Of a stretch of DNA of 15,064 nucleotides, positions 8,701 through 9,904 are shown one piece after another; position 1 is the first letter of the stretch; each line of letters opens with the position of its first letter. The notes beneath the pieces are model-generated. The model had not been told where the DNA came from. It saw nothing but the letters and a program-made list of their open reading frames with translations, and ran no database searches. The translations under genes and the position numbers were made by a program. Source of the stretch: Paraphysomonas bandaiensis (taxonomy: Eukaryota; Protista; Chrysophyceae); contig CBFFRP010000504.1 in assembly GCA_965644295.1 (NCBI GenBank), positions 1 to 15,064 on the forward strand, in the 5' to 3' direction.

Positions 8701-9904
8701 TTGCACAGTTCCATCACAAGGCACACTGTTCTCTGCCCAAAGAAAACGCCACGAAGTTTTATGATATTCGGATGATCCACTTCCTAGAGGGAACAGAAGA
8801 CCGTTAACGGTCATAAACACACAAATTACAGCGGTTAAATCACCTTCATGATTGCAATTTCAAGGTGAAGTTTGCGCAAGTAGTGCGAATTGATGCGGTT
8901 AACATTAATGACCTATAACAAGAAGAAATGCATCAGTGTAAGTAAATAAGAGGTGGGACCAATCCTAACAGTCAACGACAGCAGCGTGAATTCTAAAGTG
9001 GCTCCGATGGAAGTGTGAGCGTAATAATTATCCAAAACATTACCTTGCAAGCGAACTCTTCACCAGTTTTCTTGTGCTTACAGTAGTACACAGAACCATA
9101 ACTGCCTTTACCGATCCTCTTTTCAGTGAATATGTCGTACACATCTGAACACTTTACTCCCTCAAAGTGTTCATGCACAAAGTTCTGGAGTAAATGCGAG
9201 CATTGCCGGGTGCGGCTAGCGGCGTACTGCAACCTCGCATGGAGCTCAGAGCTCATTTGAGGTACGATACTCTCTAAGACACGGAAATACACAGTAGCGG
9301 TATGGAAGTTTCGAGCGGCAGCTTCGTTCATACCCTCTTCCAGCTGTACACATAGGCCGGTCACATATGGCATAAATCACAAGGTATATAGATGACATAC
9401 AATATTGGAATATCACCTGCTGTTCCGCCAAATCTAAAGTTTCGTTGGCTTCGGCAATAAGAAGTTGTTCGGGGGCTGTTTTAGATTTTTTCGAAGATGT
9501 AGATACCGCAGGCGCCGAAGGGGCAGGAGCAGTGTCCTTCTCTAATGGATTCTCGAGAGTATCCACAAGTTGTTTCCGTAAATCAGAAAACTCATTTAGA
9601 GTGTCTCTAGCCCTTTCATCAAGCTGGAAATCTACTGTGTTTAACAATTTGAAAGCGTGATCGATACAGAAAATTGATACACGCCTCCTAGAATCGTCTA
9701 GTTTCTCATTTCTACACCCAACACACACATTTAAAAGAATAAAAGTCACAACACTGCCACATACCCCGCGTGTGCCTGGGCTTCATCTAAAAAAGGTGCC
9801 ACAGACCTCAAAGAGCTTGGTATCGCGATGCTTCTCTGTATTTTGGGCTGTGATTCTCGTCGATTTTGAATAGAATCACCATTTGTACTATTTTCTTCCT
9901 CCAT
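5705..9904 (-). CDS. Calcium-dependent protein kinase (kinase + junction + 4 EF-hands) with N-terminal Vta1-like domain, 805 aa, 21 exons
   Basis: Exons 9904-9765, 9711-9417, 9343-9044, 8912-8844, 8783-8700, 8545-8486, 8388-8315, 8256-8145, 8070-7965, 7815-7691, 7625-7557, 7491-7435, 7313-7257, 7205-7084, 7037-6927, 6864-6800, 6637-6567, 6482-6427, 6363-6306, 6174-5951 and 5867-5705 sum to 2418 nt in frame, all introns GT-AG. Motifs: [57 protein letters not shown], junction [19 protein letters not shown], and four EF loops. Confidence 0.9.

Follow-up and report, generated by a model that had tools for sequence, protein, structure and literature searches.

The locus described here raises the question of whether a calcium-dependent protein kinase (CDPK) of Paraphysomonas bandaiensis, a marine chrysophyte, carries, ahead of its kinase domain, a tandem MIT domain of the type known from the ESCRT-III/Vps4 cofactor Vta1/LIP5, and whether such a domain would bring the kinase to ESCRT-III. 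The window, i.e., the whole stretch of DNA that was analysed (15,064 nt; positions 1 to 15,064 of the forward strand of contig CBFFRP010000504.1, assembly GCA_965644295.1), is eukaryotic and intron-rich, and every peptide quoted in a preliminary description, which had been prepared from the sequence alone, is present on its minus strand. We assign a probability of about 0.5 to the complete explanation, namely that the gene encodes an expressed CDPK with a Vta1-type tandem MIT domain that acts at ESCRT-III. If true, Ca2+ would be linked directly to ESCRT-III, a connection that animals make through separate proteins, among them ALG-2 and ALIX. The fusion of domains in one protein is one of the better hints of functional coupling that computation can offer.

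The gene is composed of the following elements:

5705..9904, minus strand: whole coding region, 21 exons, 805 aa (P0140); GT-AG at every intron, transcript joints
9904-9765, minus strand: exon 1 (gene model from open frames)
9712-9764, minus strand: intron 1 (53 nt, GT-AG)
9711-9417, minus strand: exon 2 (gene model from open frames)
9344-9416, minus strand: intron 2 (73 nt, GT-AG)
9343-9044, minus strand: exon 3 (gene model from open frames)
6363-6306, 6174-5951 and 5867-5705, minus strand: exons 19-21 (transcript joints)

Between exon 3 and the fourth EF hand lie 15 more short exons, with introns of 46-162 nt. The bounds of exon 3 are exactly those given in the preliminary description. This exon belongs to an open frame (8993-9373) which encodes both the two helices that close the N-terminal domain and the G-loop of the kinase (GKGSYGSV). 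Because the MIT2 helices and the G-loop thus share a single open frame, the fusion is independent of any splice model, as had been maintained from the outset.

Transcriptome-type runs of the organism and polyA marine metatranscriptomes contain the stretch, and four runs were compared with it over positions 6250-10120 (3,871 nt). In runs X1 and X2, single contigs (2,776 and 2,960 nt) span the 5' UTR, exons 1, 2 and 3 and downstream exons, with joints exactly at the modelled positions and zero differences; identical joints were found in run X5, a polyA marine metatranscriptome. The proposed link between exons 1-4 is therefore transcribed, and in contigs of all four runs exons 1-3 and the later exons are joined as in the model. 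Instead of starting inside exon 3, an eventuality raised in the preliminary description, the X1 and X2 contigs cover exon 1 and a 5' UTR that extends to 10031 or beyond 10120 (in X2, to at least 10120). The N-terminal domain and the CDPK are encoded in one gene, and this gene is expressed.

According to the transcript joints, the coding region continues past the fourth EF hand (EF4), through exons 19-21, to position 5705. Residues 1-658 of the spliced product match the MMETSP protein P0124 (658 aa), in which intron 18 is retained, at 100% identity, and the fully spliced 21-exon coding sequence translates exactly to the MMETSP protein P0140 (805 aa). P0124 and P0140 share a cluster, and P0124 is marked 'complete'; the MMETSP label, taxon 36769, is that of the genus Paraphysomonas, a heterotrophic chrysophyte. 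The donor of intron 18 (AAG/GTAAG; 6423-6427, minus strand) holds an in-frame TAA right after EF4, and retention of the intron gives the 658-aa form. The donor of intron 20 (5947-5951, minus strand) is also AAG/GTAAG with an in-frame TAA, and its retention would give a form of 752 aa. The 658-aa and 805-aa forms are both known as MMETSP transcripts, and the 752-aa form is a prediction.

The protein is divided as follows, the basis of each assignment being given in parentheses:

9561..9829, minus strand: first three-helix bundle (MIT1-like), residues 26-97, across intron 1 (AF2 helices, HHalign)
9477..9560, minus strand: Pro/Ala/Ser-rich linker, residues 98-125 (low pLDDT, gap-rich columns in alignment A1)
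9194..9476, minus strand: second three-helix bundle (MIT2-like), residues 126-195, across intron 2 (superposition, Pfam)
9125..9193, minus strand: connector from MIT2 helix 3 to the kinase N-lobe, residues 196-218 (conservation in alignments A2 and A3; exon common to both neighbours)
7563..9124, minus strand: Ser/Thr protein kinase domain, residues 219-476, exons 3-11 (Pfam Pkinase, 253.2 bits; catalytic residues)
6351..7562, minus strand: junction (autoinhibitory) segment and calmodulin-like domain with four EF hands, residues 477-662 (Pfam, superposition)
5708..6350, minus strand: C-terminal extension, a basic amphipathic helix followed by a disordered tail (model, family conservation)

Residues 219-662 are a canonical CDPK, and the complete CDPK announced in the preliminary description is borne out by the Pkinase match (253 bits), the four EF-hand matches, the catalytic residues and the superposition on CDPK crystal structures. 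Among the 31 family members of alignment A3, K245, E263, H340-R341-D342, N347, D363-x-G365 and A387-P388 are invariant, and the Glu of the APE motif, E389, is near-invariant. Pfam recognised four EF-hand stretches in residues 529-662 (EF-hand_1 and EF-hand_6 in four stretches, EF-hand_7 in two pairs); judged by eye, the third EF loop has no acidic residue of the usual kind at position 12. The full-length AlphaFold model (mean pLDDT 81.7, pTM 0.81) superposes on Ca2+-bound CpCDPK3 (3lij) and TgCDPK1 (3hx4) with a TM of 0.88-0.89 and an rmsd of 2.6-2.8 Å over ~475 columns, whereas the fit to inactive TgCDPK1 is far poorer (TM 0.5).

The order of kinase, junction and four-EF-hand domain is shared with the canonical CDPKs (TgCDPK1, 3hx4/3ku2; CpCDPK3, 3lij; plant CPKs), to which the identity is 30-34%. 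In contrast to these, the N-terminal variable region of the Paraphysomonas protein is a predicted folded, Vta1-type domain of ~170 residues, and a conserved basic helix of ~40 residues and a disordered tail are added after EF4. The protein does not begin with Met-Gly; some members of the family do begin with MG.

Regarding the C-terminal extension, the basic amphipathic helix occupies about residues 663-700 (6106-6350) and is modelled as a helix at residues 671-699 with modest pLDDT, and the tail beyond it has a pLDDT <50 in the full-length model. The spacing L-x-x-x-L-x-x-I-K within helix 671-699 is loosely MIM1-like. Among the closer members of the family this helix is conserved. No Pfam family and no Vta1 C-terminal/VSL match was found in residues 655-805. 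The conserved helix could possibly constitute an extra layer of autoinhibition; another possibility is that it binds the protein's own MIT domain in cis.

The N-terminal domain (residues 26-195) is very probably a remote homologue of the N-terminal tandem MIT domain of Vta1/LIP5. For the first 215 residues, PF04652 (Vta1) was the best Pfam match, with 19.1 bits (E 1.4e-3, residues 92-191), which is below the cut-off of 26.8. The family member P0076, a full CDPK whose N-terminus is 29% identical to that of the Paraphysomonas protein, matched PF04652 above the curated cut-off (36.5 bits, E 5.8e-9, profile positions 15-136 of 145). When residues 1-205 of P0076 were compared with the PDB using phmmer, the search returned human LIP5 N-terminal-domain chains (E 6.4e-5), the two MIT halves aligning collinearly. 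Vta1 was the top or near-top Pfam match in 5 of the 26 sequences of alignment A1 (three of the five being exon pieces of the Paraphysomonas gene) and in seven of ten closer relatives.

The N-terminal domain of the canonical Vta1 of the same genome, spliced from contig C86, served as comparator for the family alignment A2. HHalign aligned the two at 91.1% (score 44.9, E 1.1e-6) over 145 collinear columns, pairing residues 26-191 with Vta1 residues 3-148, and within these residues 26-97 with Vta1 residues 3-73. In the controls, 100 shuffles scored at most 17.6 (<=1.0%) and the reversed sequence scored 13.9 (0.3%); with hmmsearch, the family profile gave 23.9 bits for the genome's own Vta1 as compared with <=4.5 bits for 2,000 shuffles. 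As the shuffled and reversed controls are far lower, the resemblance to Vta1 goes beyond chance, at an identity of ~22% to the genome's own Vta1. Of the Vta1/LIP5-like N-terminus proposed in the preliminary description, the homology thus stood in its remote form, supported by HHalign and P0076, although the protein's own Pfam score stayed below the cut-off.

Several searches returned no Vta1. Pfam scans of the three exon translations taken separately gave no Vta1 match, the pieces being too short; the A1 profile (hmmsearch) and the protein's own N-terminus (phmmer) found no Vta1 among PDB sequences; and a word-index protein search with the N-terminus of P0076 returned the query alone, which reflects the limit of a word index. 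A six-frame search of the genome with PF04652 detected the canonical Vta1 on C86 alone and not the window. This canonical gene (C86:3957-7262) encodes its N-terminal domain in five or more short exons, and its C-terminal exon is VSL-like. Pfam gave no match to the VSL/Vta1 C-terminal domain anywhere in the Paraphysomonas kinase, in agreement with the preliminary description. The candidate assignment of the gene as the Vta1 orthologue was ruled out, given that it has no VSL domain, that a kinase takes that position and that the canonical Vta1 is on C86.

The model of the N-terminal domain (pLDDT 82.6, pTM 0.73) consists of six long helices, three plus three, with the disordered Pro/Ala/Ser linker between them. 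The AF2 helices of the first bundle comprise residues 30-46, 53-72 and 79-97 (pLDDT 84-95). The length of the linker differs among family members, and both models give it low pLDDT, with values <50 at residues 113-120 of the full-length one. Conservation within the domain is highest in the MIT2 bundle, where H159 is invariant; the connector contains the invariant or near-invariant residues N199, E203 and F205.

Among 350,542 PDB chains searched with Foldseek, the six best matches were LIP5 N-terminal domains, and yeast Vta1 took rank 14. The LIP5 matches had E values of ~1e-2, a whole-domain TM of 0.35-0.46 and an rmsd of ~10 Å. The predicted two three-helix groups and the first rank of LIP5 agree with what had been anticipated, whereas the whole-domain TM is low; each half of the model may match the LIP5 fold, with a predicted mutual orientation of the two bundles that differs from that in LIP5. 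A shape search of the ESM Atlas returned TPR-like rows only (TM <0.4), and its feature search returned nothing usable.

With VIA-align, residues 124-200 superposed on archaeal Vps4 (2w2u; Z 12.7, rmsd 1.8 Å, 73 aa), the calpain-7 MIT domain (Z 12.6) and LIP5 MIT2 (residues 75-158; Z 11.0), and the ULK3 MIT domain superposed on residues 126-198 (Z 10.1), values that are to be read with the caveat that helical bundles reach a Z of ~10 by chance and that designed bundles score similarly in the same lists. PDB entries matched by residues 124-200, under the same caveat, were 8uc6 (Z 12.6), 4a5x (rmsd 1.6) and 2jq9 (rmsd 2.0), and the other MIT matches were VPS4A/B, yeast Vps4, MITD1, spastin, spartin, katanin and USP8. 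Since designed bundles score alike, the case for an MIT domain is made by the enrichment of MIT domains in these lists together with the sequence, and not by Z in itself. As modelled, residues 124-200 fit the three-helix bundle of the MIT superfamily.

With exon 3 as query, HMMER retrieved 122 relatives (E<=1e-3) from 1.84 billion representatives, and their N-termini align with the Paraphysomonas protein over residues 20-215. Pkinase was present in every full-length relative scanned, and EF-hand matches in most. The named members are from Paraphysomonas, Spumella, the uncultured 'chrysophyte H1' and Ochromonadaceae sp. CCMP2298, with the xanthophyte Tribonema as a more distant one. The combination of this N-terminal domain with a CDPK defines a conserved, unnamed family, and its named members all come from ochrophytes, most of them chrysophytes. 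Its public names overlook the N-terminal domain: the entry from Ochromonadaceae sp. CCMP2298 (KAJ1429447.1, NCBI) is titled merely 'kinase-like domain-containing protein', JGI entries of members are titled 'calcium-dependent protein kinase', and a precomputed PF04652 label is carried by P0076 alone among the family. In the searchable full-text literature, no fusion of a Vta1, LIP5 or MIT domain with a CDPK, or in a kinome, was found to be described, which agrees with the earlier statement that no Vta1-CDPK fusion was known.

Two paralogues in the Paraphysomonas genome (G000:C28:158283-160652 and G000:C19:243316-245946) likewise run from the N-terminal domain through the kinase to the EF-hand region, with 33-42% identity over the long aligned pieces; the genome therefore holds at least three intact-looking members of the family. 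A further duplicate (G000:C577:111188-112925) has a recognisable N-terminal domain and EF-hand exons, together with in-frame stops, a lost G-loop and no kinase core, and is probably a pseudogene. Its interpretation as a kinase-less paralogue was rejected, as the in-frame stops mark it as a decayed copy.

Candidate partners for a tandem MIT domain are encoded in the same genome. They include CHMP1, which ends in ...DLESRLAALRK, and IST1, which ends in ...DDLTLRFAQLKK, both of these being textbook MIM1 tails, as well as CHMP5, CHMP2/3-like genes and other genes of the Snf7 family; the open frame of the last CHMP1 exon is only 26 residues long. A complex prediction for residues 24-206 with the C-terminal 52 residues of IST1 gave a score of 0.00, which speaks neither for nor against binding.

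The mechanism that we propose starts from a diverged tandem MIT domain of the Vta1/LIP5 type standing in for the usual variable N-terminal region of a CDPK. The tandem MIT module would bind the C-terminal MIM helices of ESCRT-III subunits and would thereby place the kinase on ESCRT-III assemblies. Ca2+ bound to the EF-hand domain would release the autoinhibition by the junction, as in other CDPKs, and the activated kinase would then phosphorylate ESCRT-III or associated proteins. Settings in which Ca2+ would rise may include, for example, membrane wounds, phagocytosis and abscission. We infer docking on ESCRT-III as the function of the N-terminal domain, for which we see slightly less than an even chance. 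The wider proposal is tentative, namely that chrysophytes and related ochrophytes possess, in one polypeptide, a Ca2+-gated ESCRT-III kinase whose MIT module reads MIM tails and whose CDPK phosphorylates upon a rise in Ca2+. Such a fusion predicts that, in a major group of aquatic protists, ESCRT-III is controlled by Ca2+ signals through phosphorylation.

Vta1/LIP5 (PF04652; 2rkk, 2lxl, 4txp-4txr, 4u7e), the cofactor of ESCRT-III and Vps4, likewise carries a pair of three-helix MIT bundles, arranged in the same order, as its N-terminal domain, and it binds MIM elements of CHMP5/Vps60, CHMP1/Did2 and IST1; in the Paraphysomonas protein, by contrast, a kinase is fused to the bundles and the C-terminal, Vps4-binding VSL/dimerisation domain is missing. 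The kinase ULK3 (4wzx), which phosphorylates ESCRT-III, likewise combines a protein kinase with two MIT modules. Its MIT domains are C-terminal to the kinase, its kinase is of the ULK family, and it has no Ca2+ sensor. The Paraphysomonas protein may thus be regarded as a functional analogue of ULK3 that would be Ca2+-gated, a proposed analogy of function with no sign of common descent of the two architectures.

Three other explanations of the locus deserve consideration. That an assembly or gene-model error has joined two genes is refuted: MIT2 lies in the same exon and the same open frame as the G-loop, individual transcript contigs of independent studies reach from exon 1 across the kinase, MMETSP proteins obtained independently have the same sequence, and dozens of other organisms have proteins of this architecture. 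Another explanation accepts the fusion and takes the N-terminus to be an unrelated six-helix, TPR-like domain with a convergent or chance resemblance to Vta1. The protein's own sequence is indeed below the Pfam cut-off for Vta1, neither the A1 profile nor the single sequence found Vta1 among PDB sequences, the shape search of the ESM Atlas gave only TPR-like rows with TM <0.4, and high Z scores come easily to helical bundles. This explanation is nevertheless disfavoured, and we regard it as improbable in view of P0076, which exceeds the curated Pfam threshold and matches LIP5 directly, of the 145 collinear HHalign columns shared with the genome's own Vta1 (91% as compared with <=1% for shuffles), of LIP5 and Vta1 as the best Foldseek matches among 350,542 chains, and of the recurrence of Vta1 as the top Pfam match in independent family members.

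The main rival is a serious alternative, if on the doubtful side: the N-terminal domain would be derived from Vta1 and repurposed for intramolecular regulation, oligomerisation or a non-ESCRT partner, with no role at ESCRT-III. The connector of about 20 residues that leads from MIT2 helix 3 to the kinase, with its conserved N199, E203 and F205, fits intramolecular regulation no less than it fits docking by a tethered module, and the pTM of 0.81 of the full-length model suggests a fixed packing of the domains. The divergence from Vta1 is strong (22% identity to the genome's own), and the genome already has a canonical Vta1 with a VSL-type C-terminus. There is also a precedent for a PF04652-type domain on an enzyme outside the ESCRT pathway: plant callose synthases (CALS/GSL) have an N-terminal Vta1 domain with no established ESCRT role, which has been modelled at subunit interfaces (bioRxiv 10.64898/2026.05.05.722910). 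The enzyme in that case is a membrane glucan synthase, in contrast to the Paraphysomonas kinase. What argues against repurposing is that the surface-rich MIT2 helices are the best conserved in the family, as expected of a ligand-binding MIT domain, and that the solved MIT domains in the match lists all bind MIM helices of the ESCRT-III type. If the domain were repurposed, it would be a second Vta1 domain recruited to another enzyme, alongside that of the plant callose synthases. If docking on ESCRT-III, the reading that we prefer, holds, the protein would join ULK3 as a MIT-domain kinase of a second kind and would offer a path from Ca2+ to ESCRT other than ALG-2/ALIX.

Outside the gene, the window contains a 2.4-kb, near-pure (TACA)n microsatellite (10347-12726; ~590 copies, 96% matches), its near edge lying ~440 nt upstream of the gene's start codon. 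By eye, and on the basis of the translated open reading frames alone, one neighbouring frame (1642-3785, plus strand) resembles a Na+/H+ exchanger with transmembrane motifs of the CPA1 type, and another (12841-13878, plus strand) resembles a PIG-C/GPI2-like membrane protein.
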